NCBI GenBank assembly: GCA_002269645.1
Contig: NIVC01000169.1
Location: 588,097-652,096 of the forward strand
Reading direction: 5' to 3'
Source of the DNA: Macrostomum lignano
Taxonomy: Eukaryota
DNA: 64,000 nt
Shown: positions 17,107 through 51,017 of the stretch, one piece after another
Layout of the letters: each line of letters opens with the position of its first letter
Position numbering within the stretch: position 1 is the stretch's first letter
The notes under the pieces: generated by a model
Seen by the model: the letters and a program-made list of their open reading frames with translations, nothing else
What the model was told of the DNA's origin: nothing
Databases searched by the model: none
Program-made: the position numbers and the translations under genes

Positions 17107-17785
17107 TTAGCCAGCGCCAGACAGCGCAGCGGGCAGCAGTTTGGCGCCATTGATTCCGTGAACGGACACTCGACCCGGACGCACCATGAGGCCGTGCTGC
17201 TGCTGACAGGTGAAGTACCTCTTGCCGAGGACTCGGCCGTCGTTTCGACCCAGCGGTTTTCGTAGTTCAACGCCCAGCCAAACACCGTCGGCAAAGTGCA
17301 CCCGGCCGATGAAGCGGACGGTGCCCATCAGGTTGCCGCAGAGCACCTGAAGAGATAGATTAGCAATCCATTTTATTTTATTAGCATCTGAGCGATAGAT
17401 TAGCAATCCATTCTACTCTATTAGGTTAAGAGATATAGACTAGGAATCTATTTTATTTTATTATATTTGGAGCGATAGATTAACAATCCATTATATCTTA
17501 TTAGGTTCGGAGATATAGATTAGCAATCCATTCTATTTTGTTAGGTTCGGAGCGATAGATTAGCAATCCATTATATCTTATTAGGTTCGGAGATATAGAT
17601 TAGCAATCCATTCTATTTTGTTAGGTTCGGAGCGATAGATTAGCAATCCATTATATCTTATTAGGTTCGGAGATAGATTAGCAATCCAATTACACATTCA
17701 TGCATTACATACTGCAGTCACCATACCTGTAATCCTTCGCGCAGAACAAGTGTTGCTTGTTGTTGTTGCTGCTGCTGTTGCTGCT

Positions 17786-17816
<31 letters not shown>

Positions 17817-20800
17817 TTGAGTGGCCGTGGCCTCTGCCTGCCTACCGGCGCACCTGTGCAGCCTGGCGGCAGACGCGAACACTCCGTGACCCTGCGGACA
17901 GTGGAAGTACCTTCGCCCCTCCACGGATCCGTCATTTCTGCCCACCGCGTTGTCCAGCTCCACCCCGTACCAAACTCCCGGGGCGAAGTGGCACTCGCCA
18001 ACGAACCGGACGGTGCCTCGACGTTGGCCGGCTACGATCACTCGGTCGCCGAGGGCGAAACTGTGCCGGGTTCGAACCCGGGCCTCCACGCCGCTGACGT
18101 CGATTGCGCCGCGATGGACCCGGGTGAAGCCGGACACGCGGCTCATGGGGACCAGTACCTGGCCGGGTTGGACACGGGGTCGGACACTTAATTCCTGGAC
18201 TCTTGATTCCTGATAACTAATTCTCGGACACCATTCCTGAACACTTCATTCCCGGACTCTCCTTTCCTGGACACTTCATTCTTAGGCACTCCATTTTTAA
18301 ACACTTCATTCCCGGACACTCCATTCCCGGACACTTCATTCCCAGACACTTCATTCCCGGACTCTCCATTCCTTCGGACATTTAATTCCCAGACACTTCA
18401 TTCCCGGACTCTCCATTCCTTCGGACATTTAATTCCCGGACACTTCATTCCCGGACACTTCATTCCTGGACACTTCATTCCCGGACCCTCCATTCCTCCG
18501 GACACTTCATTCCTGGAAATTTAATTCCCGGACTCTCCATTCCTCCGGACACTTCATTCCTGGAAATTTAATTCCCGGACTCTCCATTCCTCCGGACACT
18601 TCATTCCTGGAAATTTAATTCCTGGACATTTAATTCCCGGATACTTCATTCCCAGACACTTCATTCCCGGACTCTCCATTCCTCCGGACACTTCATTCCT
18701 GGAAATTTAATTCCCGGACATTTAATTCCCGGTTACTTCATTCCCGGACACTTCATTCACGGAAATTTATTTCCCGGACATTTAATTCCCGGACCCTCCA
18801 TTCCTCCGTTCACTTCATTCCCAGACACTTCATTCCCGGACTCTCCATTCCTCCGGACAATTCATTCCTGGAAATTTAATTCCCGGACATTTAATTCCCG
18901 GACACTTCATTCCCGGACACTTCATTCCCGGACACTTCATTCCTAGACACTTTATCTTCAGACCCTCCATTCCCGGACACTCACCCCCCGGCCAGCCGGA
19001 CACTGGAAGTATCTGACTCCGGACACGCAACCGTCGTGTCGGCCAGCCTGCGGCGTCTCGAGTTCAACTCCGGCCCAGACGCCTGGCGCGAATTCCACGG
19101 GGCCCCAGTAGCGGAGGGTGCCGGGCCGGGACCCAGCAACCAGGACTCGGTCGCCCAAGTTGGAAGGCGGCTGATCTGCTTGCTGCTGCGGTTTCTGCTG
19201 CGGCTGCCGCTGTGACTGCTGCTTCTGCTTCTGCAGTGCAGCTGCCTGATGTGTGATCAGAAGCGATAATTAGGATGATTCTTAGGGGATAATTGGGAAG
19301 ATTCTTAGGAAATAATTAGGAAGATTCTTAGGGGATAATTAGGAAGATTCTTAGACGATGAGTAGGGAGACTCTTAGAGGATAATTGGGGGTAGAATCTT
19401 AGGGGATAACAAGGGGATAACTAGAGAGATTCTTATACATCCAACTAAACGTGCTTCCCAGTGAAAGAAGAGGAGTGAAAGGCAAAGGCAAGGGAAGTCC
19501 AACCTCTTCAAACGCTGACGAAGCCACCGAAGCGGTTGATGAAGCGGACGACAGCGGAGCTGCAGCCGCGGCAGCCGGCACCGAAGCGGTGGACGAAGCG
19601 GACAGCCGAGGCGGTCGCTCAGGCCGACTGCCAGCCAGTAAAGTGAGCAGTCTCGATCGGATCTCTCGATTCTCAGCCGAAGAGTTTGAGTTGAACAAAC
19701 CAGAGGTCAGTTGAGGCAGGCAGTCGACGGGACGCCGGAGCAGCTCGTCTGTGGCTGCCAGAGCTGCCTGACCTGCGCTGGAGACCAGCAGGCGGGCGCT
19801 GCCTTCGCTCAGGTGTGCAGCGGCCAGGTGCAGCGGGGTGGCGTCTTCGAACTCGGTGCATCTGATTGTGAAAGAGGGCATGAATTGTTAAAGAGTCGGT
19901 TCTGAGTTCGAACTCTATTATGACCGTTTACTATGAGTTTGTTTGTACTTTAGTCTATGACCGGTTTCTATGAGTATGTTTGTACTTTAGTCTATGACCG
20001 GTTTCAATGAGCGTTTGTACTTTAGTCTATGACCGGTTTCTATGAGTATGTTTGTACTTTAGTCTATGACCGGTTTCTATGAGCGTTTGTACTTTAGTCT
20101 ATGACCGGTTTTTATGAGCATGTTTGTACTTTAGTCTATGACCGGTTTCTATGAGCGTTTGTACTTTAGTCTATGACCGGTTTCTGAGTTTGTACTTTAC
20201 TTTTCTGAGTTTGCACTTTAGTCTATGACCGGTTTCTATGAGTATGTTTGTACTTTAGTCTATGACCGGTTTCTGAGTTTGTACTTTAGTCTATGACCGG
20301 TTTCTATGAGTGCGTTTGTACTTTAGTCTATGACCGGTTTCTATGAGTGCGTTTGTACTTTAGTCTATGACCGGTTTCTATGAGTGCGTTTGTACTTTAG
20401 TCTATGACCGGTTTCTATGAGTGCGTTTGTACTTTAGTCTATGACCGGTTTCTATGAGTACGTTTGTACTTTAGTCTATGACCGGTTCTATGAGCATGTT
20501 TGTACTTTAGTCTATGACCGGTTTCTGAGTTTGTACTTTAGTCTATGACCGGTTTCTATGAGTGCGTTTGTACTTTAGTCTATGACCGGTTTCTATGAGT
20601 ATGTTTGTACTTTAGTCTATGACCGGTTTCTATGAGTATGTTTGTACTTTAGTCTATGACCGGTTTACTATGAGTTTGATTGTACTTAGTCTATGAAAGG
20701 TTTCTATGAGTTTGTTTGTACTTTAGTCTATGGCTGGTTTTTGAGTTTGTACTTTAGTCTATGGCTGGTTTCTGAGTTTGTACTTTAGTCTATGGCTGGT

Positions 20801-21659
20801 TTCTGAGATTGTACTTTAGTCTATGGAGGTTGCCAAAGTGACCCCCACTAACCTAGCCAATGGATCAGCCCCGGCCTCTAGCAGAACTTCCACCGCCTCT
20901 TGACAGTTGAACATTGTCGCCAGGTGCAACGGGGTTACGTCTGTCCACCGACTGCGCGCCTCAGGCTGAGCCCCAGCCAAGAGAAGTCCGCGCATGGCGT
21001 TGGCCGCCGCGGAGGGACTCGCCAACGCACCGCATTTTGCCGCAAAGTGAAGCTGAGCAAAGTCGGTAACCTTGATGCGGTGGCAATACAGGAAGTCAGT
21101 CTTCCTTTAAGGCGGCCGAACTATTTATAGATTTTGTTGCCAGGGGTGATTTCAGTGGGTGCCAGGGGATTTCAGTGGGGTGTCAGGGGGTTTCAGTGGG
21201 GTGTCAGGGGGTTTCAGTGGGGTGTCAGGAGGTTTCATTGGGTGTCAGGGAATTTCAGTGGGTGTCAGGGTAGTAAGAAAATACACAGGGGTATCAGTTA
21301 GAAAAATTGAAAGACAAGAATGTCAACAAGAAAGCCAGTAAAAGTACACGCTTTTTAACACAGACAAAAGTACTAAAGAGTAATATATAAACAATATCAA
21401 ATCATCGACTCACTTGATCACGATCGTTTGGTCCAACGCCTAGCTCAGCCAGACGGTCAACTATCTCAGGCAGCAGCTGCTGGGCAGGTCGGGTCCATTG
21501 GCGAATCAGGGCGAATAGCTGATTAGGAGTTGCCACCTCCAGCTGCTGGGAGCAGCCTGAGCACTGCAGATCGAATAGCTCCGCTCCAAGGGACTGGCAT
21601 CTTGAGCAGAGGGGTGCCAGAACACTCTCATAGATTTGGAACTCCTGGGAATGAGGCAT
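17107..21659 (-). CDS. CLIP3/CLIP4: CAP-Gly domain-containing linker protein 3/4-like (ankyrin repeats + three CAP-Gly domains)
   Basis: Exons 21414-21659, 20853-21070, 19504-19861, 18985-19245, 17727-18158, 17107-17346, all phase-consistent. N-terminal LFALIRQW...GPNDRD and RSRWTDVTPLH match the CLIP3/4 ankyrin region. There are three GVWxGVEL...G(R/K)(N/H)DG...RYF.C CAP-Gly motifs and a C-terminal RP.RV...GINGAKL. Confidence 0.92.
17355..17690. repeat. Intronic minisatellite (GATAGATTAGCAATCCA..., ~47 bp)
   Basis: Tandem copies filling the last CLIP intron. Confidence 0.9.
17752..17820 (-). repeat. Coding CAG/CAA microsatellite (polyQ ~22) between CAP-Gly 2 and 3
   Basis: In-frame Q tract in exon 17727-18158. 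Confidence 0.9.
18190..18980. repeat. Intronic minisatellite (TTCCCGGACACTTCA units)
   Basis: Fills the CLIP intron 18159-18984. Confidence 0.95.
19265..19400. repeat. Intronic minisatellite (GGATAATTAGGAAGATTCTTAG)
   Basis: About 5 copies. Confidence 0.85.
19915..20822. repeat. Intronic minisatellite (TTTGTACTTTAGTCTATGACCGGTTTCTATGAG.., ~38 bp)
   Basis: About 24 copies in CLIP intron 2. Confidence 0.95.
21140..21280. repeat. Intronic minisatellite (TTTCAGTGGGGTGTCAGGGGG)
   Basis: About 6 copies in CLIP intron 1. Confidence 0.85.
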
Positions 21660-23048: not shown

Positions 23049-23163
23049 CAAGACAGGCTGCTTCTTGAACAGACAAGCTCCTAAATCAAGAAAGCGAGAG
23101 AAAAACACAAGCAAAAGCAAAGCAAGCAAACCTAACAAACCAGCAGACATTGTACAAGCGACA

Positions 23164-23961
23164 ATGTCGCTCTGGATCTCCCCCACGAACGTGTTCACGC
23201 CGTTCTCGCACGCGCTGCCGCTTGTGACAGCCATGAGCGAGCTGGACGACTGGCTGACGCCTGAGTACGACCCACTGGCGCATCTGTGGTGTCACCGAGG
23301 TCCGAAGCGACTGCGCCACTGGTCCCGGACTGTCGACCTTCGCGGCTTCTCGCCCAAGGACGTGTCGGTGAAGCGAGAGGACCGAAAGGTGCGCGTCGTG
23401 GCTCGACTCGAGAACGGCGACGACGTGACGGAGGTGAAGCGGACGGTGGACCTGCCGGAGGAGGTGGACGCTGAGAAGCTGAGCAGCGGCTTCACCCAGG
23501 ACGGCATGCTGGTTCTGAAGGCGCCGTTCAAGGAGCAGCAGCGGCAGCAGCGGCAGGGTGACTCGGTGTGGGACGAGCTGCGCGTCCTGCTGCGAGGCGA
23601 CTTGCAGTCCGGCCAGCTGGTGGAGGCCGACGACGGCACCAAGCGGTTCAAGGCGGAGCTGTCGGTGCGCGAGTTCAAGCCGGACGAGATTCGCATCAAG
23701 CAGCAGGGCGACCGCGTCCGAGTCGAGGCTGAGCACAAGGACGAGTCGAACGGGCAGCGGATCCACAAGCGGCTGGAGAGAGAGTTCCAGCTGCCCGCCG
23801 GCACCAAGCTGGATCAGGTGGCCAGCAAGCTCAGCCAGGACGGCCGGCTGTGCATCGAGGCGCCGTTCGAGGCTCTGCCAGCCAAGCAGCCAACGCAGAT
23901 CAAGGACGTTCCCATGGAGATTGAGAACGCCGATGATCAGAGCAGGGCGATGGGCTGCTAA
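23164..23961 (+). CDS. Small heat-shock protein with two alpha-crystallin domains (p40/major-egg-antigen type), intronless; copy 1
   Basis: Two ACD motifs: VDLRGFSPKDVSVK...LSSGFTQDGMLVLKAP and LSVREFKPDEIRIK...VASKLSQDGRLCIEAP. Probable start ATG at 23164. Confidence 0.93.
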   Translation: MSLWISPTNVFTPFSHALPLVTAMSELDDWLTPEYDPLAHLWCHRGPKRLRHWSRTVDLRGFSPKDVSVKREDRKVRVVARLENGDDVTEVKRTVDLPEEVDAEKLSSGFTQDGMLVLKAPFKEQQRQQRQGDSVWDELRVLLRGDLQSGQLVEADDGTKRFKAELSVREFKPDEIRIKQQGDRVRVEAEHKDESNGQRIHKRLEREFQLPAGTKLDQVASKLSQDGRLCIEAPFEALPAKQPTQIKDVPMEIENADDQSRAMGC

Positions 23962-24645: not shown

Positions 24646-25439
24646 GGGCGGATTGTGCAGTTGTGAGCAGTAGCCATCATAGGAAGAGACTACTGTTGTG
24701 AGCCCCGTCCTCCGGAGCGACGCCTACAGCTGAACCCTGTTGGGAAGCTGCGACCCCCAGGTCCCCAGTTAGAGCTCCCGTCCCGCGCCCTGGGGAGAAG
24801 CAGGAAAAAGGTCAGAAAAGAACTCACGAGCTTCCGTGCAAAACCGATGCAGTTCGCAATTGTGATGGTAGACAAGAAGTTTGTCTGTCTATGGCGAATC
24901 TGACATATTGAACTTAATGTTTCAATCTCTATGGCGAATCTAATATATTGATCTGAATACTTCAGTGTCTTTTTTGGCCATTGTTTAACTATGCAACATA
25001 CTAGACAATCTATCATTTGCTGAGATGCTGATGCTCAAGGAGGAGTTGCTGAGATGCCAAGCGTCAAGTGGGCATGGGCTTTTATGCGGAGGCTCAAAGG
25101 GGAAGTTGAGGATACTCATATCTTAGAGTTTTTGCTTTAAATATCTTTCCTTTACAGAAGCTAACAATATAGTGATCGTCAGGGACTACTCAAACATCGG
25201 GACGGGAAACTAGGCAAATCATGGCGAAGTTTTTACGAGGCTGGTTAAATCTATGGCCGCGCCAATGCAGCAGTAGCTATTTCAATATTTCAATAAATCT
25301 TCAATAAATTTTATATTTTAATATACACAGACGGGAAAATGAACAGATGCGAAAAAATATGTAACAGATTTAAGCATTGAATAGTCGGGAATACTCAGTA
25401 GATGTGAACTTGTCTGTTCTGCAATGTCACGCACTTCTA

Positions 25440-25677
25440 AGTTTTTTTGTCTTTCTCTCTTGAACGGTGACGGATGATGGAGCCAGCTTCGATGATCTCC
25501 GGACAAGTCCCTTAAAGAATGTGCTTGTTGCTCTTCGTTCGACAGGGCCTTTTTCCATCGCTCTCGCTCAACAGAGTCCTTCGGAAACAGATGGACTTTC
25601 GTAGCCAATCGTTCGGACTCGTAATTTGACTTGCAGCCAACAACGCTGCCCTTTCTTGGCATTGATGCCAACAACAC
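25440..25677 (-). mobile_element. THAP zinc-finger-like relic (transposon-associated)
   Basis: MPRKGSVVGCKSNY...HLFPKDSVERERWKKAL fits the THAP pattern (C2CH start, FP, W); the first Cys is mutated to Gly. Confidence 0.6.
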
Positions 25678-26204
25678 AAGCAGAAAAATCGAGCTTGTCC
25701 TACGCGTCTGCCAGAAACTCTGCTGAAACTGCTATAAAATAATGGTAGATTAAGTCTATGGTTTCAGAATTAAATAATGATCAGCAGTCACTCGTGACTG
25801 TGACCATTATCCAAGTCTGAAACCATAGAAATAATCGCATTATCATATAGACTAGCGTTTACGGTTGATCATTATGTAACGCCATTAAGCCACGCCATTA
25901 AGTAACGCTGCAGTGTCTTCGTGCCATAGATATTGGCTCGGCAGTGAGCAGGGTCAAGGGAGCGCAGCTCCCTTGCGGGGGTGTGGGGGCAGAGCCCCAC
26001 TAATCGGACCATAGACAATTTTTTAGAACACAGTTCTCTAAAAGAAAAGCTCGACCATGAAGTCTGTTAGGAAGTTAAGAACTAGAAGCAAGAAGCGAGA
26101 GAAATCGAATTAAAAATGCCTCTTATCAACTGGAAAAATCTACCGGTCGACAGTTTAGACGGCATCTCGTCTACTGAACTAGATTTCTGAGTGAACTGAG
26201 CGCC

Positions 26205-29063: not shown

Positions 29064-32000
29064 TCACCCATTAAAAGTGCAGCTAGTCTCATCCGTGTCT
29101 GTGCTAGCTCTGGACGGGCTGGGGGTGTAGCCCACGGCGCAAGAGCACAGCCGGTTCCTGGTGCGCTTCTTCCTTTTCCAGAGGACAACGCAGTTGCTTT
29201 TGTACCAATCGGACCAGTTGCTCCACGAGTTCCAGCTGCACCAGCCCATGAATCTGGCATCAGACTGGGAGGCCTCCGTGGACGGCGTGGCGACAGAGCT
29301 GGTGATGCAACTGCAGGTCCGATCTCTGGACCTCTGTTGGTTCACATTGCAGCCTGCAATGTTTAATATTGATGAGGTTGTAACCCTGGAGTCCTTGAGC
29401 AAGACACGTAACTCTGCATTGCTTCAGTTCACCCAGCTGTAAAATGGGTGCCAGCATTAGCTGGGGTAACTGAGGGTGTGTGTGGCGACCCCCCCCCCCC
29501 CAGTCCTTGGACTGAACAGCCGTACGCAGCTTTCAGATGCGCCGCGCAATAGCTGCGGCTGAGCTGTCGGTTGCACATCACAACTTTTTAGCTGGGTCTA
29601 CTACGTGTAGAATTCGTTCTCAAGCTCACCTGAGGTCCAGGTGCTCCAGTCCTGCCACGCGCACCAGCCCATGTATCTGGAGTCAGTTTGAGAAGCCTCA
29701 GTGGACGGCGTGGCGACGGCAGTGGTGACGCAGCTGCAGCTCCTCACCCTGGTTCGCTGCTGGTTCGAGTTGCAGCCTGGAGAAAGGTGCATGGTAGCAG
29801 TTTGAGCACTTCACTGGGGCTTGATGACTGGCACTATATTCAGTAAACATGAATGCACTTTTTAAGTTATACTGGCAAATACTTCAACAAAGCTCGAGTT
29901 GCTATGAAAGCAGTTCATCTTCCCTCATGTTCTCTTGAGCCTCATGAGCTGTTAAACCTGAACTCTGTAGCAAACATGTGGGTCTAAATTCAATGAGATT
30001 TAAAAATGCTTCACAAAAGTTTCATAATTTTTTTTGAAAGGATGTGCTACAGATGTCCGTTTGAAGCAATATGGAATAATTGACACTTTCTACAAGTCTC
30101 AAACAATTGAGAACAATAAAATGGAACCCAGAAAGCAGTTAATGTTCTTAAAAGATGGTTTAAGAAGTTCAACAAGTGTTATTTGTAAATACCAATACAA
30201 GTTCAAAAAATGACAGGTCTTTGAGGACTTCATTCTCAAGCTCACCTGTAGTCCAGGTGCTCCAGTCCTGCCACGCGCACCAGCCCATGTATCTGGAGTC
30301 AGTTTGAGAAGCCTCAGTGGACGGCGTGGCGACGGCGGTGGTGACGCAGCTGCAGCTTCTCACCCTGGTGCGCTGCTGGTTCGAGTTGCAGCCTGGAGAA
30401 ATGTTTTTGAGCACTGGTGAGCATTATCTGCATGGTACATACCTAAGAAGTCATCCACACCCGGTGAAACTGAAGTGCCATCGTTTACTTTTTTAGCCAA
30501 AAGCAAGTCTGTTGTGAGCACAAACTCTAAATAAGGGCCTCCTGACTCCTGAATCTACATGTAATTTATCGATATTTATACAATAGACAATGCTTATAAT
30601 GTGCCTTCTTGTCTTGGGCGAGGGCTACTTTAAGAGCCAGAGAAAGCCAGCCACTTCAGTCTAGCACTGACAATATTTGCCAAACTCACTTCAAAGCAAG
30701 GAATTTGTCGCTAGGCTCACCTGTAGTCCAGGTGCTCCAGTCCTGCCACTCGCACCAGCCCATGAACCTGGCGGCAGTCTGAGAAGCCTCAGTTGATGGA
30801 GTCGCTACCGGAGCGATGGGGCAGCTGCAGTTCCTCTCCCTGGTGCGTTGCTGGTTTGAGTTGCAACCTGGAATGTTGCGCATGTTTTCAGCGAAGTTCT
30901 TTTTTCGGGAGCTCACTAGCGAAGTGTTTGGTCACAGAGAGCTCACTACCGAAGTGTTTGGTCACAGAGAGCTCACTACCGAAGTGTTTGGTCACAGAGA
31001 GCTCACTATCGAAGTGTTTGCTCCCAGAGAGCTCACTAGCGAAGTGTTTGGTCACAGAGAGCTCACTACCGAAGTGTTTGGTCACAGAGAGCTCACTACC
31101 GAAGTGTTTGGTCACAGAGAGCTCACTAGCGAAGTGTTTGGTCACAGAGAGCTCACTACCGAAGTGTTTGGTCACAGAGAGCTCACTACCGAAGTGTTTG
31201 GTCACAGAGAGCTCACTACCGAAGTGTTTGGTCACAGAGAGCTCACTACCGAAGTGTTTGGTCACAGAGAGCTCACTACCGAAGTGTTTGGTCACAGAGA
31301 GCTCACTACCGAAGTGTTTGGTCACAGAGAGCTCACTACTGAAGTGTTAGCTCACAGAGAGCTCACTACCAAAGTGTTTGGTCACAGAGAGCTCACTAGC
31401 AAAGTGTTTAATCACAGAGAGCTCACTAGCGAAGTGTTTGGTCACAGAGAGCTCACTACCGAAGTGTTTGGTCACAGAGAGCTCACTACCGAAGTGTTTG
31501 GTCACAGAGAGCTCACTACCGAAGTGTTTGGTCACAGAGAGCTCACTACCGAAGTGTTTGGTCACAGAGAGCTCACTACCGAAGTGTTTGGTCACAGAGA
31601 GCTCACTACCGAAGTGTTTGGTCACAGAGAGCTCACTACCGAAGTGTTTGGTCACAGAGAGCTCACTACCGAAGTGTTTGGTCACAGAGAGCTCACTACC
31701 GAAGTGTTTGGTCACAGAGAGCTCACTAGCAAAGTGTTTGGTCATAGAGAGCTCACTACCGAAGTGTTTGGTCACAGAGAGCTCACTACCGAAGTGTTTG
31801 GTCACAGAGAGCTCACTACCGAAGTGTTTGGTCACAGAGAGCTCACTAGCGAAGTGTTTGGTCACAGAGAGCTCACTAGCGAAGTGTTTGGTCACAGAGA
31901 GCTCACTACCGAAGTGTTTGGTCACAGAGAGCTCACTACCGAAGTGTTTGGTCACAGAGAGCTCACTACCGAAGTGTTTGGTCACAGAGAGCTCACTAGC

Positions 32001-34295
32001 GAAGTGTTTGGTCACAGAGAGCTCACTACCGAAGTGTTTGGTCACAGAGAGCTCACTACTGAAGTGTTTGGTCACAGAGAGCTCACTACCGAAGTGTTTG
32101 GTCACAGAGAGCTCACTACTGAAGTGTTAGCTCACAGAGAGCTCACTACCAAAGTGTTTGGTCACAGAGAGCTCACTAGCAAAGTGTTTGGTCACAGAGA
32201 GCTCACTAGCGAAGTGTTTGGTCACAGAGAGCTCACTACCGAAGTGTTTGGTCACAGAGAGCTCACTAGCAAAGTGTTTGGTCACAGAGAGCTCACTAGC
32301 GAAGTGTTTGGTCACAGAGAGCTCACTACCGAAGTGTTTGGTCACAGAGAGCTCACTACCGAAGTGTTTGGTCACAGAGAGCTCACTACCGAAGTGTTTG
32401 GTCACAGAGAGCTCACTACCGAAGTGTTTGGTCACAGAGAGCTCACTACCGAAGTGTTTGGTCACAGAGAGCTCACTACCGAAGTGTTTGGTCACAGAGA
32501 GCTCACTACCGAAGTGTTTGGTCACAGAGAGCTCACTACTGAAGTGTTAGCTCACAGAGAGCTCACTACCAAAGTGTTTGGTCACAGAGAGCTCACTACC
32601 GAAGTGTTTGGTCACAGAGAGCTCACTAGCGAAGTGTTTGGTCACAGAGAGCTCACTACCGAAGTGTTTGGTCACAGAGAGCTCACTACCGAAGTGTTTG
32701 GTCACAGAGAGCTCACTACTGAAGTGTTTGGTCACAGAGAGCTCACTACCGAAGTGTTTGGTCACAGAGAGCTCACTACCGAAGTGTTTGGTCACAGAGA
32801 GCTCACTACCGAAGTGTTTGGTCACAGAGAGCTCACTACTGAAGTGTTAGCTCACAGAGAGATCACTACCAAAGTGTTTGGTCACAGAGAGCTCACTAGC
32901 AAAGTGTTTGGTCACAGAGAGCTCACTAGCGAAGTGTTTGGTCACAGAGAGCTCACTACCGAAGTGTTTGGTCACAGAGAGCTCACTACCGAAGTGTTTG
33001 GTCACAGAGAGCTCACTACCGAAGTGTTTGGTCACAGAGAGCTCACTACCGAAGTGTTTGGTCACAGAGAGCTCACTAGCGAAGTGTTTGGTCACAGAGA
33101 GCTCACTACCGAAGTGTTTGGTCACAGAGAGCTCACTACCGAAGTGTTTGGTCACAGAGAGCTCACTACCGAAGTGTTTGGTCACAGAGAGCTCACTAGC
33201 GAAGTGTTTGGTCACAGAGAGCTCACTACCGAACTGTTTGGTCACAGATGTTCAAAACGGTTCTGAAGCCTCACCTGAGCTCCAGGTCGCCCAGTCCTCC
33301 CAGGCGCACCAGCCGATGAAGCGCTGCTCGTTCTGCGAGTCGCCTCCGTCGGCTGTGCGGTCCTCGCAGTGGGCCCCAGCGGCAGGAGCCTGCGGACTCG
33401 GGCATCGGCAGCTTCGACCGCGGAGGCGTTGAGCGGCGTGGCAGGCGGCGCTCCAGGAGGTCCACGAGCTCCAGGGACACCAGCCGCCGCTCACTGCGGA
33501 CCGGAGATTCACAGATTGAGCTCGATAATCAAGTCATCCATCCATCGAATCAATAATCAAGTCATCAAGCCATAAAAACAGTAATCAAGTCATGCAGCCA
33601 TCGAATCAATAATCAAGTCATGAAGCCATAAAATCAATAATCAAGTCATGAAGCCATAGAATCAATAATCAAGTCCTCAGCCATAGAATCAATAATCAAG
33701 TCATCAAGCCATAGAATCAATAATCAAGTCATCAAGCCATAGAATCAATAATCAAGTCATCAAGCCATAGAATCAATAATCAAGTCATCAAGCCATAGAA
33801 TCAATAATCAAGTCATCAAGCCATAGAATCAATAATCAAGTCATCATGCCATAGAATCAATAATCAAGTCATCAAGCCATAGAATCAATAATCAAGTCAT
33901 GCAGCCAGAGAGTTTTTCGTAGATTTTGAGAGCTCTTATTCGAGCTCGGACCGCTGCTTACCTCGACGCCTGTTGCTCAGCGCCAGCACCCGACACCCCG
34001 CCGGCATCGCGGAGGCGTCGGCCGTGTCGCCGAGAAGCCGGCAGTCTCCGGCGGACTCGTCGCGAGGGCACCAGGCGACCCCGACGCAGCTGCGGGACGC
34101 GGCCTCGCACTCGGACGCGCACTCGATGTCCGAGCGGGCGGCCACCAGCGCGGCCGGCTGTCCGGACTCCGCGGCCTTGCCGCTGTCCCAGTGCGCCTGG
34201 CCCGGTGAGTACAGGTACTGATCGGGCTCGCTGCAGGCACTTGGCGCCGCCAGCTGCAGCAGCAGTGCGGCCGTGGCAACCGTTGCTAGGGTCAT
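29064..34295 (-). CDS. Secreted PAN/apple-domain + thrombospondin-type-1-like repeat protein, copy 1 (427 aa)
   Basis: Exons 33962-34295, 33275-33493, 30721-30867, 30246-30392, 29630-29776, 29064-29353, all phase 1. Signal peptide MTLATVATAALLLQLAAPSA, PAN-like SDIECASECEAASRSCVGVAWC...CRLL, then WCxWxxWSxW...RxRxRxC repeats. Confidence 0.85.
29384..29578 (+). mobile_element. 5'-truncated copy of the CORE-type SINE, in the last intron of PAN-TSR copy 1
   Basis: Near-identical to 6720-6913; lacks the tRNA head. Confidence 0.85.
30900..33250. repeat. Intronic 30-bp minisatellite (GTCACAGAGAGCTCACTACCGAAGTGTTTG), ~78 copies
   Basis: Explains the 816-aa ELTTEVFGHR ORF; lies between GT/AG-bounded exons. 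Confidence 0.97.
33520..33905. repeat. Intronic 28-bp minisatellite (AATCAATAATCAAGTCATCAAGCCATAG)
   Basis: About 14 copies; homologous array at 38130-38705. Confidence 0.95.
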
Positions 34296-34629
34296 TGCTA
34301 ACTCTGTTCAGTGTAAAAGCTGTTCTCATGTGTTTGCAGAATTTTTTCCCGGCTGCATGTGAAATCGGCAGCCTTTAAGTAAAGCGAGGGGAGGTGCTGA
34401 ATCCTCCCTAGGCTTGGGTTCCTCAGTCTCCAGCCAGTCAGGAAAGGGATGCTTGGCGAATGGCAAGGATGGCTTGGCTGGGCCGATCATTAAAAGCAGA
34501 GACTGCCTGGAATGAAGGAAATAGCCCAAGTTTCCCTGAATCGTGGGAATAAAGGGGGGCTGCAGTCTTGGCGGAAAATCGTTTGGATTCAACTTTTCTT
34601 TTCTTTGTATGAATGACGGCATGAAATAA

Positions 34630-35355
34630 GTGAGGGAGATGAAGAAGAGAGAAAAGGAGATGAAGGAGAGAGGAAAGGAGATGAGGGAGATAGGAAGGGA
34701 GATGAGGGAGAGAGGAAGGGAGATGAGAGAGAGAGTAAGGGAGATGAGGGAGAGAGGGAGATGAGGGAGAGAGGAAGGGAGATGAGGGAGAGAGGGAGAT
34801 GAGGGAGAGAGGAAGGGAGATGAGGGAGAGAGGGAGATGAGGGAGAGAGGAAGGGAGATGAGGGAGAGAGGGAGATGAAGGAGAGAGGAAGGGAGATGAG
34901 GGAGAGAGGGAGGGAGATGAAGGAGAAGGGAAGGTACGAGCTCGCAGATCAGGGAGATAGGGAGATGAGAGAGAGAGGAAGGGAGATGAGGGAGAGAGGG
35001 AGTTGAGGGAGAGAGAAAGGGAGATGAGGGACAGAGGGAGATGGGGGAGAGAGGAAGGGAGATGAGGGAGAGAGGGAGATGAGGGAGAGAGGGAGATGAG
35101 GGAGAGAGGGAGATGAGGGAGAGAGGAAGGGAGATGAGGGAGAGAGGGAGATGAGGGAGAGAGGGAGATGAGGGAGAGAGGAAGGGAGATGAGGGAGAGA
35201 GGGAGATGAGGGAGAGAGGAAGGGAGATGAGGGAGAGAGCGAGATGAGGGAGAGAGGGAGATGAGGGAGAGATGAAGGGAGATGAAGGAGAAGGGAAGTT
35301 ACGAGCTCGTAGATCAGGGAGAGAGGGAGATGAGGGAGAGAGGGAGATGAGGGAG
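34630..35355. repeat. Polypurine GAGGGAGAGAGGGAGAT repeat tract in the spacer of the inverted gene pair
   Basis: About 720 bp almost entirely G/A on the + strand. Confidence 0.95.
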
Positions 35356-36131
35356 GTGTTTCGACAATACAACGTGATGTCATTCACGGCATGACTCATT
35401 TAAAAGTTTTGTTCTCAATCTAATTTGAGCGATGTCCATCGTGCACGCATCATATCGAGTGAGACCTACGCGTCTCCACTCTCCAGCTTAAGAGAGGTAG
35501 CGTCAACTTGTTAGACAGTTTCAAGTTTTGCTCGCAGAAAAAACTTCCTTTTCATCCTTGTTTGCTTTAATTAGCATCAAAAAAGTTCGCAACAATTGTG
35601 TAGCTCTCAGATGCCTTTAAAATTGTTCGTTTCTAAGAAAACTGTTGAGCCTACTCAAAATGTCGCCTTCTGCATCTGCCAAAAAGTAATTGTTCAACAG
35701 CGAAAAAGGATTGCCTTTTGTCCGCATTGATTCACGACACACATGTGTAAGACGAGTTGTTTGTCTTGTCTCCTATTTTCGAGTGTCAGCCATCTGATGT
35801 TGCTGTCCTCAACCGTCAAGGACACGTACCCAGCGTCAGGTCAACACACAGAATGTCGCCCTCTGCTTGCCGGACGACATCGAGGCTGTCATACAGCGTA
35901 CGGAAAATGTGGTAAAACAGCGTGTTCATAAATTATCTGGAGTAAAATAGTAAAGTACTCGTCAATACTGTTAAGAATAAACTGCCAGGTTCTAATGTGC
36001 ATTGACTGGATTAAAAATGGTTTCGGGAAAGCTCTATAGCATGCTCGTCCAATATTGGACACACTGTTCTCAGTCACTCGCGGGGGCACACCAATACAGT
36101 TACAGCCCCCCAAACAGTTCGTGACTAGATC

Positions 36132-36881
36132 CTACTCGGCAGCCTTTTGGATCGCCTTGGGGACGTCCTTGATCTTCGGTGGCTGCCTGGTTGGCAGAGC
36201 CTCGAACGGCGCCTCGATGCACAGCCGGCCGTCCTGACTCAGCTTGCTGGCCACCTGATCCAGCTTGGTGCCGGCGGGCAGCTGGAACTCTCTCTCCAGC
36301 CGCTTGTGGATCCGCTGCCCGTTCGACTCGTCCTTGTGCTCAGCCTCGACTCGGACGCGGTCGCCCTGCTGCTTGATGCGAATCTCGTCCGGCTTGAACC
36401 GCTTGGTGCCGTCGTCGGCCTCCACCAGCTGGCCGGACTGCAGGTCGCCTCGCAGCAGGCCGCGCAGCTCGTCCCACACCGAGTCACCCTGCCGCTGCTG
36501 CAGCTGCTGCTCCTTGAACGGCGCCTTCAGCACCAGCATGCCGTCCTGGGTGAAGCCGCTGCTCAGCTTCTCAGCGTCCACCTCCTCGGGCAGGTCCACC
36601 GTCCGCTTCACCTCCGTCACGTCGTCGCCGTTCTCGAGTCGAGCCACGACGCGCACCTTTCGGTCCTCTCGCTTCACCGACACGTCCTTGGGCGAGAAGC
36701 CGCGAAGGTCGACAGTCCGGGACCAGTGGCGCGGTCGCTTCGGACCTCGGTGACACCACAGGTGCACCAGCGGGTCGTACTCAGGCGTCAGCCAGTCGTC
36801 CAGCTCGCTCATGGCTGTCACAAGCGGCAGCGCGTGCGAGAACGGCGTGAACACGTTCGTGGGGGAGATCCAGAGCGACAT
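36132..36881 (-). CDS. Small heat-shock protein copy 2 (two ACDs), with a 9-aa in-frame deletion and a different C-terminus
   Basis: Near-identical to 23164-23961 but lacks AELSVREFK; ends ...KDVPKAIQKAAE*. Confidence 0.85.
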   Translation of the reverse strand: MSLWISPTNVFTPFSHALPLVTAMSELDDWLTPEYDPLVHLWCHRGPKRPRHWSRTVDLRGFSPKDVSVKREDRKVRVVARLENGDDVTEVKRTVDLPEEVDAEKLSSGFTQDGMLVLKAPFKEQQLQQRQGDSVWDELRGLLRGDLQSGQLVEADDGTKRFKPDEIRIKQQGDRVRVEAEHKDESNGQRIHKRLEREFQLPAGTKLDQVASKLSQDGRLCIEAPFEALPTRQPPKIKDVPKAIQKAAE

Positions 36882-37736
36882 TGTCGCTTGTAGAATGTCG
36901 GTTTGGTAGGTTTGCAAGGGAGAATTTTATCAGTACAACACAAAAAATAGGGAAAAATGTTGATATTTCTACTATCAGTAAGCTAAACGAACTTGTCTGA
37001 ATTTTTTTAATACTGAACTATATTCAAATGTTCAATGAACGTTATGTCTAACGTTCTAGAATACCGTTGAATTGCTTACGACAGATCATAAACACTTTTC
37101 TGGAGAAATTGACTTGTAGTTTCGATCCAAGTAGGTTGTTGCCTACTTCTGAAATCACACATCAATGGAAGGATATACAGACAAACCATTTTGGATGCAC
37201 AAGAATTTCCCACAGGAAGTTTTACCGCCGAGGTTTTCTTGCAGGGTTTTTACAGTCGGAATTTCAAGTCAAATCCAGTCTATAGACAGTGCTGGACTAG
37301 ATTAGAACTTGCCTTGACTAGACATAAACTAGACTAGATTACAAATCCGATTGGAATTGACTTGGCACACCTGCCATATTTCCCACTTGATGATTGGTGG
37401 TTGCTATCCAAGAAAACAATGGTCACCCACTTCAATGCAGGACACTTGAATACTTGAAATCGTATTAAAGACGCGATGTCGCAGTTTCTGAAGTGTCTTG
37501 TAGCCAATCAATCAAAAGTCTATCTGTCAAATTTTTCATTTTACAAGCTGGTGAAAACCCTAACTGTCAGTGGATAAATGACCTCACCTCTCAATCATGG
37601 CGGGTAAAGAGAGAACTCAATGAATAGAAATTAAGAATTCAAGTTTGCAACCTCCATTTCCTACTATAAAAATGGGAAATAGAAAACCAGATATTTATCT
37701 GAAAATCTTATACAATCGGCTAAGTTAAAGTTAGCA

Positions 37737-40700
37737 ATGACCCTAGCAACGGTTGCCACGGCCGCACTGCTGCTGCAGCTGACGGCGCCAGGCGCCTGCA
37801 GCGAGCCCGATCAGTACCTGTACTCACCGGGCCAGGCGCACTGGGACAGCGGCAAAGCCGCAGAGTCCGGACAGCCGGCCGCGCTTGTGGCCGCCCGCTC
37901 GGACATCGAGTGCGCGTCCAAATGCGAGGCCGCATCTCGCAGCTGCGTCGGGGTCGCCTGGTGCCCTCGCGACGAGTCCGCCGGAGACTGCCGGCTTCTC
38001 GGCGACACGGCCGACGCCTCCGCGATGCCGTCGGGGTGTCGGGTGCTGGCGCTGAGCAACAGGCGTCGAGGTAAGCAGCGGTCCGAGCTTCAGGAAGAGC
38101 TCTCAGAATCTACAATGAGTTCTTTGGCTGCATGACTTGATTATTTAATCTATGGCTTGATGACTTGATATTAATTATTCGGCTTGATGGCTTGATTATT
38201 GATTCTATGGATGGATGACTTGATTATCGATTCTATTGCTTGATGACTTACTTATTGATTCTATGGCTTGATGACTTGATTATCGATTCTATTGCTTGAT
38301 GACTTGATTATTGATTCTATGGCTTGATGACTTGATTATCGATTCTATTGCTTGATGACTTGATTATTGATTCTATGGCTTGATGACTTGATTATTGATT
38401 CTATGGCTTGATGACTTGATTATTTTTCTATGGCTTTATGACTTGATTATTGATTCTATGGCTTGATGACTTGATTATTGATTCTATGGCTTGATGACTT
38501 GATTATTTTTCTATGGCTTGATGACTTGATTATCAATTCTTTGGCTTGATGACTTGATTATCGATTCTATGGCTTGATGACTTGATTATCGATTCTATGG
38601 CTTGATGACTTACTTATTGATTCTATGGCTTGATGACTTGATTATTGATTCTATGGCTTGATGACTTGATTATCAATTCTTTGGCTTGATGACTTGATTA
38701 TTGAGCTCAATCTGTGAATCTCCGGTCCGCAGTGAGCGGCGGCTGGTGTCCCTGGAGCTCGTGGACCTCCTGGAGCGCCGATTGCCACGCCGCTCAACGC
38801 CTCCGCGGTCGAAGCTGCCGATGCCCGAGTCCGCAGGCTCCTGCCGCCGGGGCCAACTGCGAGGACGGCACAGCCGACGGAGGCGACTCGCAGAACGAGC
38901 AGCGCTTCATCGGCTGGTGCGCCTGGGAGGACTGGGCGACCTGGAGCTCAGGTGAGGCTTCAGAACCGTTTTGAGCATCTACTGTGAACAAACACTTCGG
39001 TAGTGAGCTCTCTGTGACCAAACACTTCGGTAGTGAGCTCTCTGTGACCAAACACTTCGGTAGTGAGCTCTCTGTGACCAAACACTTCGGTAGTGAGCTC
39101 TCTGTGACCAAACACTTCGGTAGTGAGCTCTCTGTGACCAAACACTTCGCTAGTGAGCTCTCTGTGACCAAACACTTCGCTAGTGAGCTCTCTGTGACCA
39201 AACACTTCGCTAGTGAGCTCTCTGTGACCAAACACTTCGCTAGTGAGCTCTCTGTGAGCAAACACTTCGGTAGTGAGCTCTCTGTGACCAAACACTTCGC
39301 TAGTGAGCTCCCGAAAAAAGAACTTCGCTGAAAACATGCGCAATATTCCAGGTTGCAACTCGAACAAGCAACGCACCAGGGAGAGGAACTGCAGCTGCCC
39401 CATCGCTCCGGTAGCGACTCCGTCAACTGAGGCTTTGCAGACTGCCGCCAGGTTCATGGGCTGGTGCGAGTGGCAGGACTGGAGCACCTGGACTACAGGT
39501 GAGCCTAGCGACAAATTCCTTGCATGCTTTGAAGTGTGTTTGGCAAATATTGTCAGTGCTAAACTGAAGTGGCTGGCTTTCTCTGGCTCTTAAAGGTAGC
39601 CCTCGCCCAAGACAAGAAGGCACATTATAAGCATTGTCTATTGTATAAATATCGATAAATTACATGTAGATTCAGGAGTCAGGAGGCCCTTATTTAGAGT
39701 TTGTGCTCACAACAGACTTGCTTTTGGCTAAAAAAGTAAACGATGGCACTTCAGTTTCACCGAGTGTGGATGACTTCTTAGGTATGTACCATGCAGATAA
39801 TGCTCACCAGTGCTCAAAAACATTTCTCCAGGCTGCAACTCGAACCAGCAGCGCACCAGGGTGAGGAGCTGCAGCTGCGTGACCATTGCAGTCGCCACGC
39901 CGTCCACTGAGGCTTCTCAAACTGACTCCAGATACATGGGCTGGTGCGCGTGGCAGGGCTGGAGCACCTGGACTACAGGTGAGCTTGAGGATTGTTTGCG
40001 TAAAATGCCACAGTCAATCAGGGTTCGTTGTGTTTTCATTCGAATATCTTTTATTATTCACTGGGACGGGGGTTGAGCAACCTGCTAGAATTTTACTAAA
40101 TTGCTCTGAAGTACGAAGTAACAGAAAATTAAAAATTAAAAAACGACTGGGTCTCGAATAAGGCCTTTGGTTTGATTTTGCGTTCGTTTACATTAATTTG
40201 GAGCTTGTACACGAAAATTTCGGTGTTGTGCAATTCATACTCATGAAGGCCAATTTTGAAGGCACAGGGAGTGTACATACCTGCTGCCTGCGACGATTAG
40301 AAAGCCAGGGTCGCGCTGCGCACCATGTGTGAAGGTGTGCAGGAGTGCAGTACCTGCGTACAGTATTGCGCGCTTTTATGCATGTTCTCAGGAGTCAGGA
40401 GAACTTGCACAGCGCTGGTTGAGATGACGATGACACTAGAGGCGTTGCTCTAGCGTGCCCACAGCTCAATTATGAATATTATTATATTACCTTAGGTAGT
40501 TGTTTAAAAATTTTGAAACAATTGAAATGCCACACATTCCAGGCTGCAACTCGAACCAGCAGCGCACCAGGGTGAGGAGCTGCAGCTGCGTCACCACCGC
40601 CGTCGCCACGCCGTCCACTGAGGCTTCTCAAACTGACACCAGATACATGGGCTGGTGCGCGTGGCAGGGCTGGAGCACCTGGACTACAGGTGAGCTTGAG

Positions 40701-41612
40701 GATTGTGTACCTCTACCACTCTCAGTCAGGGTTTGTTTTGACTTCTTGCAAATTGGCTCAAATCCGTATCTGTTAAAGCTTCTGGATTATAAAATTAATG
40801 GTTTCACGTAGCTCATGTAATCCGATCACTGGACGTTAATACTGTCGCAGTGATGAGTTGAATTTTTCAAATTCTACAGCCAGAAGGTAATGCTGGATTG
40901 CAAATAGATTTTTCGAGGCCAAGCGACCTGCTTAAATTTTTGTTTAAATTTAGGTTGCAACAAATTGAGGACAAAATTTTGCTAAACCAAGTCAGTGAGA
41001 TGATCAAATGCCACACATTCCAGGCTGCAACTCGAACCAGCGGCGCATCAGGACAAGGAGCTGCAGCTGCGTCACCACTGCCGTCGCTACGCCGTCCACT
41101 GAGGCTTCTGAAACGGACACTAGATACATGGGTTGGTGCCAATAGCAGGACTGGAGCACCTGGACTACAGGTGAGCTTGAGAAGTAATAGAACTAATAGA
41201 ACTCAAACATATGGAGCCTCCGATTTTTTTTGACCATGTGCATTGATAATCCCAGTATGATAAATCATGATTGCTGTATCGTAGTGTTTTGAGTATCGAG
41301 TACTCATAATTGTCATTTTAAGGCTGCAACGTGATTCAGCGGCGAACGAGGGGTCGAACCTGCGGCTGCATCACCGGCCCTGTCACTTCGCCGTCTACTG
41401 AAACTTCTCAAACTAGCACTAGATTCATGGGCTGGTGCCCCTGGGACTCGTGGAGCAGCTGGTCTGGCTGGTACAAAAGCAACTGTGTCATCCTGTGGAA
41501 AAGAAAGAAGCGCACTCGAACCCGAAGCTGTAGCTGCACAGTGAGCTACACGTCAAGTCCGTCCACTTCGAACCTTGAGACCGACGAAACTCGCTGCAAT
41601 TTTAAAGGATAG
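37737..41612 (+). CDS. Secreted PAN/apple + TSR-like protein, copy 2 (one extra cassette exon carrying a nonsense codon)
   Basis: Exons 37737-38070, 38733-38951, 39352-39498, 39832-39978, 40543-40689, 41024-41170 (TAG at 41143-41145), 41323-41612. Confidence 0.85.
38130..38705. repeat. Intronic 28-bp minisatellite (reverse complement of the 33520-33905 array)
   Basis: About 20 copies. Confidence 0.95.
38984..39310. repeat. Intronic 30-bp minisatellite (reverse complement of the 30900-33250 array), ~11 copies
   Basis: Same unit, far fewer copies. Confidence 0.95.
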
Positions 41613-48684: not shown

Positions 48685-51017
48685 TCCACGGTTCAGATCG
48701 TGTAGTAGTGTACACCAGAACAAGAATCCTATCTCAGCTAAATGTATGCCAGTGTATGCCAAAAACAAAAAAATTCCCTAATATGTATGCCAAAAATTCC
48801 TCCTAAAAAGTCATTTGGTTTTCACGAGTAGAGTTTTCTAAGAAAGGCTTTCGTACAAAAATTCTTTCAAATATTACAAATATTTTCATTTTAAACAAAC
48901 TTAAATTAAACCTACCAAAAAAAGAATGCAAAATTTACATTCTTAGCAATAATTTACACAAGTTTTATTCATTGTTAATTTTAAAAAAGCTAAAAGTTTA
49001 TCACTCACTTTCTAGACTATATAAATTTTCCTTCATTTTATGTAAAAACTAAAAAGGGTTAATTAAAATTACAATTTTTATACACAGCATGAATTTATTC
49101 ACCAAAATTGGTATGCCAAAAATTTCTTGAGCTCAAAGTGGTATGCCAAAGTGGTACGCCAAAATAGCCAAACTTTTCAATGGTACGCCAGAAAATTCCT
49201 GTTTACATGTAATAACCTTCCTGAGTATGGCCCCCTATCTATTACACAAGGGAAAAAGAATTTAAAACATGAGTTAAAGCAAAAAATGCTAAAGAAATGC
49301 TTATCTATTAGGCCTATAGTCTTATATTTTAGGCCTATTATAGACTTTTTAGGCTTAGTTAGCCTACAAAGGTTTTGGAAATTCTAGCTATATTAATTTT
49401 TTTATTAATAGAGATTGGTGATAAAGGTTACCCTATTGAAATAAGTTTCAAAAACCTGCAGACATGCAACACAGGTGCCAAAATTATGTCCTCAAAAGCG
49501 CGACGCAATACCAAATTTTGTTGACTAGGGGGCAGCGACACGCAACACAACACCAATGTCCGTTGACCAAATGACCGGGGGGGACACCACAGCAGCCACA
49601 TTGCAATTGACAATTCCCATTCTGCCATTCATTCCCAACACTGAGACCATAAGGCAAGGGACAAGAGTATTCCTTTCAATTTTGCGAAAAAAGAAATGAA
49701 ATTTAAAAATAATAAACAGTAAAATAACAAAGGTACAACACTTAGAAAAATAGTGCATGCATTGTAACTAACAAATAACATTTCTAAAAATTATATTTGA
49801 AGTATTAGTTACTTTATCATCAAAATAAAAAAGAACAATTCAAGAACTAGTTATTATCAAACATGTTTGAAACATTTAAATACTGAGAAACAACTGTGAA
49901 CATATTATAATGAAACATAGTTTGCGAGGTTTTGGCTACAGATCCAGGCCGCAAGGTGACACATGATGATGCCAGCCACCAAGTTGCCATACTGTCACGT
50001 CGCACAACGCGATGGTTTCCACAGTGTTGTGCCACGTGACATACCACTTGACACCACTGTTGCGCAACATGACACCAAGAGAATCCAAAAATGCGACAGA
50101 CAGTCGTCCGCCTTTTGTCAACTTTTCCAATAGGGAAAGGTTAAAAAGTGATATATTAAGCATAGTAATTTGTTAAGTAAATTAAATTTGTATCAAAAAT
50201 ATTAAGTCTAGTAGAAAAACTTAGTTTTTTTACAAAAATGATCATAGCACCTAATAGACAAAATGCATTATAAGAATGTTTAAAGATATGAAAAGTTTTA
50301 TAAGTTTTTTATGTCTTGACCAATTTTTGAAAGGTGTCTTTACTCATGCTAATAAGATCCATCAAATAGAATAAAAATACTAAAAAAGCTTTTATCATTG
50401 CACTAGAACCCATAATGTAAGATATAATTATAAGTTTCAACTTTTTTAAACTAATAAGACTTAATAATGATTTATATAATGGCAATAGTTATTTTATCAT
50501 TTACTAGAATATGATAATGAAGTAGAGCAATTGCTCATTACCAGGTCCTATTTATTTATTTTGCAAAAATAGCCAAGACTATTCATCTTGACTTTAGTTC
50601 CTATCAACCTATCCTGTACACCTATTGTACACATAGCTTTATAGCTGACAAAATGCATTCATTTCTACTTTCTCAACCATAAAGTCAAAGGCTATAAATT
50701 GCTTCCAATGATTCTTTCAAGCCTTGAAGTCATAGTTATTGTGTGGCCATAGTTATGTCTACATTTCTTGCCTAAAAAACCTCCATATCTATCCATCTGT
50801 CCAAAGAATCCATAGCCCAACTCTACCATTAATATTTCTTCAACATCAATTTCAAATCAAGAAGTCATTTTATTCGAGAGTCTAGAGAGTCTGTAAAACA
50901 GGATTTAGATGTTTAAATGCGAGGATTGTGTAAAAGTAGTATAGTAGGAAAGTAGCATTATTTTAGTCCAGTATGACAAAAAAACAGTTCCAAATTTCAT
51001 GCCTAAGCTGTATAGCA

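Follow-up and report, generated by a model that had tools for sequence, protein, structure and literature searches.

Positions 29064 to 41612 of a 64,000-nt stretch of Macrostomum lignano contig NIVC01000169.1 (the whole stretch is referred to below as the window) contain two protein-coding genes on opposite strands, designated copy 1 (minus strand) and copy 2 (plus strand), that are divergently transcribed. The explanation that best accounts for them, to which we assign a probability of about 0.75, is that they are two old, divergent paralogues situated around a small heat-shock gene, that each encodes a secreted protein of 427 amino acids (aa) built from rewired thrombospondin type 1 repeats (TSRs), that the pair is subject to concerted evolution, and that an additional exon of copy 2 is a disabled relic. 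The gene pair is a real feature, and the molecular reading given to it in a first-pass annotation of the sequence is largely right; the coordinates and the peptide quoted there are all correct.

Exon structure and evolution of the pair

Both genes have the same layout, consisting of a signal-peptide exon, a 219-nt exon, a series of 147-nt cassettes and a terminal exon, and the locus is bounded at 29064 and 41612 by the final base of each gene's stop codon. The sole strongly hydrophobic stretch of the protein is at the N-terminus (aa 1–17), so the product should be secreted, as had been proposed. The mature chain (8.1% Cys, 6.9% Trp) comprises an N-terminal domain of about 90 aa followed by six repeats, R1 to R6, of about 49 aa each, and the 33 Cys are divided between the repeat region (26) and the N-terminal domain (7). 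The exons of the two genes are as follows.

33962–34295, minus strand: copy 1 exon 1, with the ATG, a signal-like segment and the seven-Cys N-terminal domain; encodes aa 1–111, ends in phase 1 and has a GGTAAG donor
33275–33493, minus strand: copy 1 exon 2, 219 nt, phase 1-1; encodes R1, which of all the repeats is closest to a canonical TSR, and the Trp ladder of R2
30721–30867, minus strand: copy 1 cassette 1, 147 nt, phase 1-1, found by pattern search
30246–30392, minus strand: copy 1 cassette 2, found by pattern search; its translation is the 49-aa peptide of the first-pass annotation
29630–29776, minus strand: copy 1 cassette 3, found by pattern search
29064–29353, minus strand: copy 1 terminal exon, with the end of R5 and a longer R6 (five Trp and an extra C-terminal Cys); stop codon TGA
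37737–38070, plus strand: copy 2 exon 1, with the ATG, a signal-like segment and the N-terminal domain; TATAAA at -72
38733–38951, plus strand: copy 2 exon 2, 219 nt, phase 1-1
39352–39498, plus strand: copy 2 cassette 1, found by pattern search
39832–39978, plus strand: copy 2 cassette 2, found by pattern search
40543–40689, plus strand: copy 2 cassette 3, found by pattern search
41024–41170, plus strand: copy 2 cassette 4, with intact splice sites and an in-frame TAG at 41143–41145; differs from the other cassettes by 16–19 nt
41323–41612, plus strand: copy 2 terminal exon; stop codon TAG

The pattern search (regular expression AG|G.TGCAA...|GTRAG) recovered seven exons of exactly 147 nt, three on the minus and four on the plus strand, and these are the 147-nt, phase 1-1 cassettes that had been described previously. 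Every internal exon of both genes is in phase 1-1, AG/GT is present at all junctions, and if cassette 4 of copy 2 is omitted the two genes encode proteins of the same length (427 aa) and identical architecture. The exons are offset from the protein repeats by half a unit, a 147-nt exon specifying the B and C strands of one repeat together with the A strand of its successor, and with this half-repeat, phase 1-1 register any number of cassettes keeps both the reading frame and the cysteine register. At the DNA level, the ladder of four Trp codons that typifies the repeats (TGG N6 TGG N6 TGG N6 TGG) occurs 14 times in the window against an expectation of 0.01, and all 14 occurrences lie inside the locus on the coding strand of the respective gene.

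The 5' parts of the two genes form a homogenised inverted tract, with arms that are 94–98% identical, introns included.

30232–34303, no strand: left arm, from 8 nt 5' of the ATG to just beyond cassette 2
37729–39992, no strand: right arm, the counterpart of 30232–34303

The tract begins 8 nt 5' of both start codons, at a common GTTAGCAATG, and ends about 14 nt beyond cassette 2. Within it, intron 3 is identical between the copies at 325 of 333 positions, the 5' introns are 97% identical, and the number of synonymous substitutions per site (dS, Nei-Gojobori method) is only 0.07–0.11. No alignable sequence was found between the copies 5' of the tract, from intron 4 onward, or in the 3' flanks, and the terminal exons differ at 27% of nucleotides, with a dS of 1.57, 0.19 nonsynonymous substitutions per site (dN) and a dN/dS of 0.12 by the same method. 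The low dS of the 5' part, taken together with terminal exons that are saturated and constrained, indicates that these are old paralogues, both of which have been kept by purifying selection. Homogenisation of the 5' two-thirds is recent, and its simplest cause is gene conversion between the two inverted copies. Only 3–7 nt separate cassettes 2 and 3, whether within or between genes, and the introns that flank them share no more than 17–18 nt at the exon edges; near-identity of these cassettes despite unalignable introns indicates that concerted evolution extends to the cassettes. Cassette 4 of copy 2, with its 16–19 nt differences, stands outside this exchange. The promoters of the two genes are unrelated, and the TATAAA at -72 is found in copy 2 only. 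Trans-splicing is known in Macrostomum, and the AG directly before the ATG may serve as an acceptor for a spliced leader.

Cassette 4 of copy 2 reads ..YMGWCQ*QDWSTWTT (the asterisk is the TAG), and its length and splice sites are normal. The TAG arose through a cluster of four substitutions, GCGTGG to CAATAG, with the loss of an invariant Trp codon. A frameshift in this exon was considered and rejected, as the lesion is an in-frame stop and the length is unchanged. In the explanation favored here, and within the joint probability given above for the whole of it, cassette 4 is probably a disabled relic, leaving three intact cassettes in each gene. It is also possible, if unlikely, that copy 2 has recently died, cassette 4 being spliced in to give a 371-aa truncation or mRNA decay, with copy 1 as the only functional gene. 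The acceptor (cacattccag) and donor (gtgagcttgag) of cassette 4 are the same as those of the intact neighboring cassette, the stop sits at an invariant Trp, and the clustering of four substitutions means that it is not a simple base-calling error. On the other hand, copy 2 has no second lesion, and every Cys and Trp is conserved relative to copy 1. Its terminal exon, although 3' of the stop, has been under long-term purifying selection (dN/dS 0.12 at dS 1.57), and the omission of cassette 4 restores exactly the 427-aa architecture of copy 1.

The first-pass annotation had counted three cassettes in one gene and four in the other, and proposed that the two genes differ functionally in length, with repeat number tuned by exon duplication. 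The fourth cassette is indeed physically present in copy 2, and symmetric phase 1-1 exons permit any copy number, but it contains an in-frame stop, intact cassettes are equal in number (3 versus 3), and it is the most diverged of the set (16–19 nt, compared with 3–7 nt among the others). With the extra cassette disabled by its stop and both genes coding for 427 aa, this assembly contradicts a functional difference in length, which is improbable.

Derivation of the repeats from TSRs

In a search of PDB sequences, R1 (aa 111–167) matched solved TSRs of thrombospondin-1 with an E-value of 1.2e-10. When compared by hhalign with a profile of 222 canonical TSRs, R1 aligned with a probability of 97.4% (E 1e-11) over 42 columns, extending up to the fourth of the canonical cysteines (C1 to C6); for the cassette-type repeats R2–R5 the probability was 94.3% (E 1e-7), and the aligned part was limited to strands A and B. 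In the resulting column mapping, the first three Trp correspond to the canonical ladder and the fourth lies on C1, while the Cys following the ladder is C2 and that following RxRxR is C3. Nothing beyond C3 aligns in the cassette repeats, where VTTAVATPSTEASQTDS stands in for the C4–C6 part. The motif WxxWxxWxxW is present in all 12 intact repeats (R6 has five Trp), and the residues G, W, C, W, W, W, R, R, R, C, C and P are invariant across 11 aligned repeats; the three arginines, R25, R27 and R29, have canonical spacing to C2 and C3. The cassettes also align in register with R1, with which they have invariant W, R and C columns in common.

Canonical TSRs have six conserved Cys that form three disulfides (PMC9198472), a scheme that is not followed here: the cassettes keep only C2 and C3, R1 keeps C2, C3 and C4, and neither C5 nor C6 occurs in any repeat, unless a Cys at the R6 terminus is C6-like. 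The consensus for O-fucosylation by POFUT2 (CxxS/TCxxG) has no match in either protein. None of the Pfam TSR models (PF00090, PF19028, PF19030 and PF22195) reached its gathering score, PF00090 giving 15.6 against a cut-off of 21.6, in R1 only, and PF22195 giving 24.3–24.9 against 27. The earlier description of the repeats as non-canonical TSRs is apt, since no Pfam TSR model reaches its cut-off yet the hhalign and PDB matches are significant, and the four-Trp ladder, the Cys within it and the Ser/Thr-rich tail are all real. The Ser/Thr segment had been placed at the third disulfide, but it stands in place of the entire C-terminal strand, from which each of the three canonical disulfides draws one partner (C4, C5 or C6), and C1 is replaced by the fourth Trp. 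Each repeat keeps the motifs from which the Trp-Arg ladder of TSRs is built, WxxWxxWxxW in strand A and RxRxR in strand B, and its cysteines are rewired, the fourth Trp standing for C1 and a Val/Thr/Ser/Pro-rich strand or linker for C4–C6. A single-sequence AlphaFold2 model of the mature protein has three strands per repeat, at low confidence (predicted local distance difference test, pLDDT, 38.6).

An exhaustive phmmer search of 1.84 billion representative proteins returned 133 matches but no orthologue, in keeping with the lineage-specific family that had been proposed. The matches that were inspected are, with the exception of one junk repeat, ordinary multi-TSR proteins that match through R1, and none of them covers the N-terminal domain or the terminal exon. 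The best were an SCO-spondin-like protein of Mytilus galloprovincialis (XP_076085385.1), SCO-spondin of Nematostella vectensis and coadhesin/hemicentin-like proteins of Stylophora. A word-indexed homology search with the full protein gave no match, nor did exact look-ups of five candidate products, and literature searches turned up no account of this family. A conserved orthologue with the same exons and repeats that score as canonical TSR1 was not among the results. It is most improbable that the repeats are unrelated to TSRs and represent a convergent Trp-rich, Cys-rich repeat. Such an origin would fit the failure of every Pfam TSR model to reach threshold, the loss of four of the six canonical Cys and the absent O-fucose site, but it does not fit the extended similarity of R1 to canonical TSRs as far as C4 and to thrombospondin-1 (E 1e-10), the alignment of the cassettes in register with R1 at common invariant W, R and C columns, or the multi-TSR nature of the phmmer matches. 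On sequence comparison, the repeats are a shortened, TSR-derived and lineage-restricted variant of a well-known adhesion module, and not a new kind of system.

Canonical TSR arrays resemble the two proteins in their Trp ladder, Arg strand and C2/C3 positions, in the similarity of R1 through C4, and in being secreted tandem arrays. They differ in having six Cys, a length of about 55–60 aa and the O-fucose site CxxS/TCxxG, whereas the repeats described here have 49 aa, a fourth Trp on C1, neither C4–C6 nor the O-fucose site, and an additional pair formed by the ladder Cys and the Cys two residues past C3 (C3+2), and they score below all Pfam cut-offs. The nearest TSR subtype is found in M. lignano itself, in BOX15_Mlig009063 (UniProt A0A267E2T2), which has eight short TSRs besides its fibronectin type II domains and membrane anchor. 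It has the same ladder Cys (WCxW), a CxC after the Arg strand, a period of 46–47 aa and four Cys per repeat; hhalign scored it at 97.2% with R1 and 94.9% with the cassettes, and phmmer placed five repeats in register. However, it keeps C4 and lacks C2, its ladder consists of two Trp and a Tyr, its flanking domains are different, and it has a transmembrane tail. It is not an orthologue (E 9e-9). Its gene is mostly a single 2-kb exon without cassette exons, indicating that the cassette organisation is specific to the paired-gene family. The internal repeats of this M. lignano protein (gene at NIVC01002830.1, 3001–6260) have four Cys, and C5/C6-like Cys occur only in its last two repeats, echoing the special terminal repeat of the pair.

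Properdin (complement factor P) is alike in having a similar size, a small N-terminal domain, six TSRs and little else, and the model of its C-terminal TSR, PF22195, is the only Pfam model near threshold (24.9 against 27). It is also heavily C-mannosylated. Properdin is, however, a vertebrate protein with canonical six-Cys TSRs, and orthology is not implied. Mlig-ap2, a very large protein that functions in the temporary adhesion of flatworms, combines vWD, TIL and LDL-receptor domains with 46 long repeats and has TSRs only at the C-terminus (PMC6410801). Although it is likewise a secreted Macrostomum protein with TSRs, its architecture is wholly different, and a Pfam scan detected none of the vWD, TIL, LDL-receptor, C-type lectin and EGF domains of Mlig-ap1 and Mlig-ap2 in either protein of the pair.

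The Cys within the ladder is not unique to these proteins. The phmmer matches yielded 839 distinct TSR units, and in 23 of them, from 10 other proteins, a ladder Cys (after the first Trp) occurs together with a Cys at C3+2, with one exception each way; this covariation makes it very probable that the two form a disulfide pair. A TSR subtype with eight Cys (P0121, the P0113 fish protein cluster and P0058) has the same ladder and C3+2 Cys but keeps all six canonical Cys as well. In the cassette repeats the ladder Cys would pair with the C3+2 Cys within the repeat, and the remaining two, C2 and C3, lie one at each end of strand B. C4, to which C3 normally bonds, is kept only in R1, the repeat without a predecessor, and only R6, the repeat without a successor, has an extra C-terminal Cys where C6, the usual partner of C2, would be. 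This distribution suggests bonds between repeats, and by cysteine bookkeeping C2 of repeat n most likely bonds to C3 of repeat n+1, a scheme that pairs all 26 Cys of the repeat region. More tentatively, the array as a whole may be a covalently chained rod, in which the two canonical end-cap disulfides of neighbouring repeats, C2–C6 of repeat n and C3–C4 of repeat n+1, would have merged into a single C2(n)–C3(n+1) bond. Under this chain model each 147-nt exon would carry one half of each of four disulfides, so that the gain or loss of a cassette would never leave an unpaired Cys. We know of no description of such a disulfide topology in TSRs, or of such modularity between exons and disulfides.

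The N-terminal domain had been annotated as PAN/apple. Its seven Cys are spaced C-x36-C-x3-C-x6-C-x5-C-x8-C-x16-C, and when the domain was searched alone the only Pfam family returned was PAN_1, below its cut-off (14.2 bits against 21.4, E 0.041) and spanning profile positions 15–58 of 76; a Pfam scan of the full-length proteins gave no match to PAN_1 or PAN_4. No PAN chain was among the phmmer matches of the domain to PDB sequences, and a BLASTP comparison with a plasminogen PAN sequence aligned 7 residues at E 0.1. The AlphaFold model of the domain, of low confidence (pLDDT 51), has a helix on CASEC followed by three strands, and a Foldseek search with it found no match at E <= 0.001. The Cys spacing and the predicted order of helix and strands are compatible with PAN, and are not diagnostic. 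The earlier assignment comes down to a single sub-threshold match that gained no backing from the PDB search, the model or Foldseek; the domain may be PAN-like, which we regard as a possibility and not as a finding.

Surroundings of the locus

The start codons of the two genes are 3441 nt apart, and the spacer between them contains a GA-rich array and an open reading frame (ORF) for a small heat-shock protein. The description of the genes as a head-to-head pair holds for their divergent orientation, but not in the sense of adjacency, given the ORF and array between them. The features of the spacer and the minisatellites of the introns are listed below.

34632–35355, no strand: GA-rich tandem array in the intergenic spacer
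36132–36881, minus strand: two-domain small heat-shock ORF (PF00011), between the genes and outside the TSR family
33525–33911, no strand: 28-bp minisatellite in intron 1 of copy 1, 13.9 copies
38120–38704, no strand: 28-bp minisatellite in intron 1 of copy 2, 21 copies
30909–33248, no strand: 30-bp minisatellite in intron 2 of copy 1, 78 copies, 96% matches
38972–39310, no strand: 30-bp minisatellite in intron 2 of copy 2, 11 copies

The small heat-shock ORF is intronless and intact-looking, has two alpha-crystallin domains, and its start codon is 855 nt from that of copy 2. A paralogue at 23126–23921 (plus strand), also intronless and with two alpha-crystallin domains, is 94% identical to its counterpart at 36151–36915 (minus strand), the copy near 36 kb lacking eight of its residues (AELSVREF) and having a different C-terminus. 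Only two relatives were found among 5.8 billion proteins, BOX15_Mlig005128g1 of M. lignano (60% identical) and one other (68%), which indicates an origin of the window in a macrostomid-like flatworm. There is no TSR-like exon within 10 kb of the three loci of the small heat-shock homologue in M. lignano. That the inverted gene pair is an artefact of assembly (a fold-back or collapsed haplotypes), as inverted arms of 94–98% identity might suggest, is scarcely credible in view of terminal exons that differ at 27% of nucleotides (dS 1.57), unalignable introns beyond cassette 2 and unalignable 5' and 3' flanks, minisatellites of 78 and 11 copies, and a 3.4-kb spacer that is unique, asymmetric and has another gene inside it.

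A coding function for the 30-bp array, as (SVTKHFGSEL)n, was considered and rejected, there being a stop between the array and exon 2, recurrent in-frame stops and good splice sites on either side. The long 30-bp array gives rise to an antisense ORF of 816 aa (30816–33266, plus strand), almost certainly a by-product of the repeat. Exons of an RNA helicase of the Mtr4/SKIV2L2 type (DSHCT domain, PF08148) occupy 50973–60851 (plus strand), and the introns of this gene are almost entirely minisatellites, at 54.3–55.4 kb, 55.96–57.26 kb, 57.66–59.06 kb (a 23-mer, 61 copies) and 59.8–60.4 kb (a 16-mer, 39 copies). The C-terminal domain of the helicase gave matches of only about 70%, to eukaryotic fragments. 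Tandem Repeats Finder reported 50 rows scoring at least 200 in the window, overlapping rows included, and with this many across the window, intronic minisatellites look like a general trait of the genome. What looks like a CLIP-related gene at 17721–21106 (minus strand) encodes ankyrin repeats along with two CAP-Gly domains (E 7e-27 and 2e-22), with a 15-bp tandem array between its exons (18181–18981). Elsewhere in the window there are exons for a PLAT/LH2 domain at the left edge (1208–2606, minus strand), a weak THAP-like ORF near 25.5 kb (25321–25731, minus strand; 22 bits, below cut-off), and an inverted repeat of about 375 nt with 90% identity (11339–11710 and 11970–12347) that overlaps a 152-bp tandem repeat and may represent the end of a transposon or a foldback element. 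Neither Rfam families nor tRNA genes were found when the window was scanned for them.

Probable role and implications

In other proteins, TSR arrays use the basic face of the ladder to bind sulfated glycans as well as proteins of the matrix or cell surface. This behavior, together with the signal peptide, the dense C-mannosylation sequons and the Ser/Thr/Pro-rich segments, points to a secreted, glycosylated binding or matrix protein. By analogy, the most likely role is that of a secreted, heavily glycosylated and extended binding or matrix protein. The product would be an extended extracellular protein with C-mannosylation and O-glycosylation, and the basic face of its TSRs would bind glycans or matrix. 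The sequon for C-mannosylation is WxxW/C (PMC8433626, PMC10154233), and each protein has 19 WxxW sequons. Candidate settings for the protein are adhesion and recognition, the two that the first-pass annotation proposed, and reproductive secretions. The low dN/dS argues against the fast evolution that is typical of many reproductive proteins.

Several points weigh against the explanation preferred here, that of two old paralogues encoding secreted proteins with rewired TSRs. All splice junctions of both genes are predicted, and the splice sites of cassette 4 are normal, its inclusion being an event that may make copy 2 a null allele. Both the TSR and the PAN models score below the Pfam gathering thresholds, and with AlphaFold models of low confidence (38.6 and 51) the fold and the disulfide map are predictions. 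The proposed disulfide between repeats comes from counting cysteines, and the total number of Cys is odd (33, with seven in the N-terminal domain), which leaves at least one unexplained. The function is drawn wholly from TSR modules elsewhere.

If the explanation is true, the TSR scaffold tolerates the loss of four of its six cysteines, with a Trp-Arg ladder that is one rung longer and the remaining cysteines redeployed, possibly between domains, and this would be useful for understanding TSR folding and C-mannosylation and for the design of repeat proteins. The locus also provides a clean, small example of concerted evolution, in which conversion is limited to the 5' arms and to single cassettes, and homogenised 5' arms adjoin 3' ends whose divergence is saturated. 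The pair gives flatworm biology a candidate family of secreted glycoproteins.

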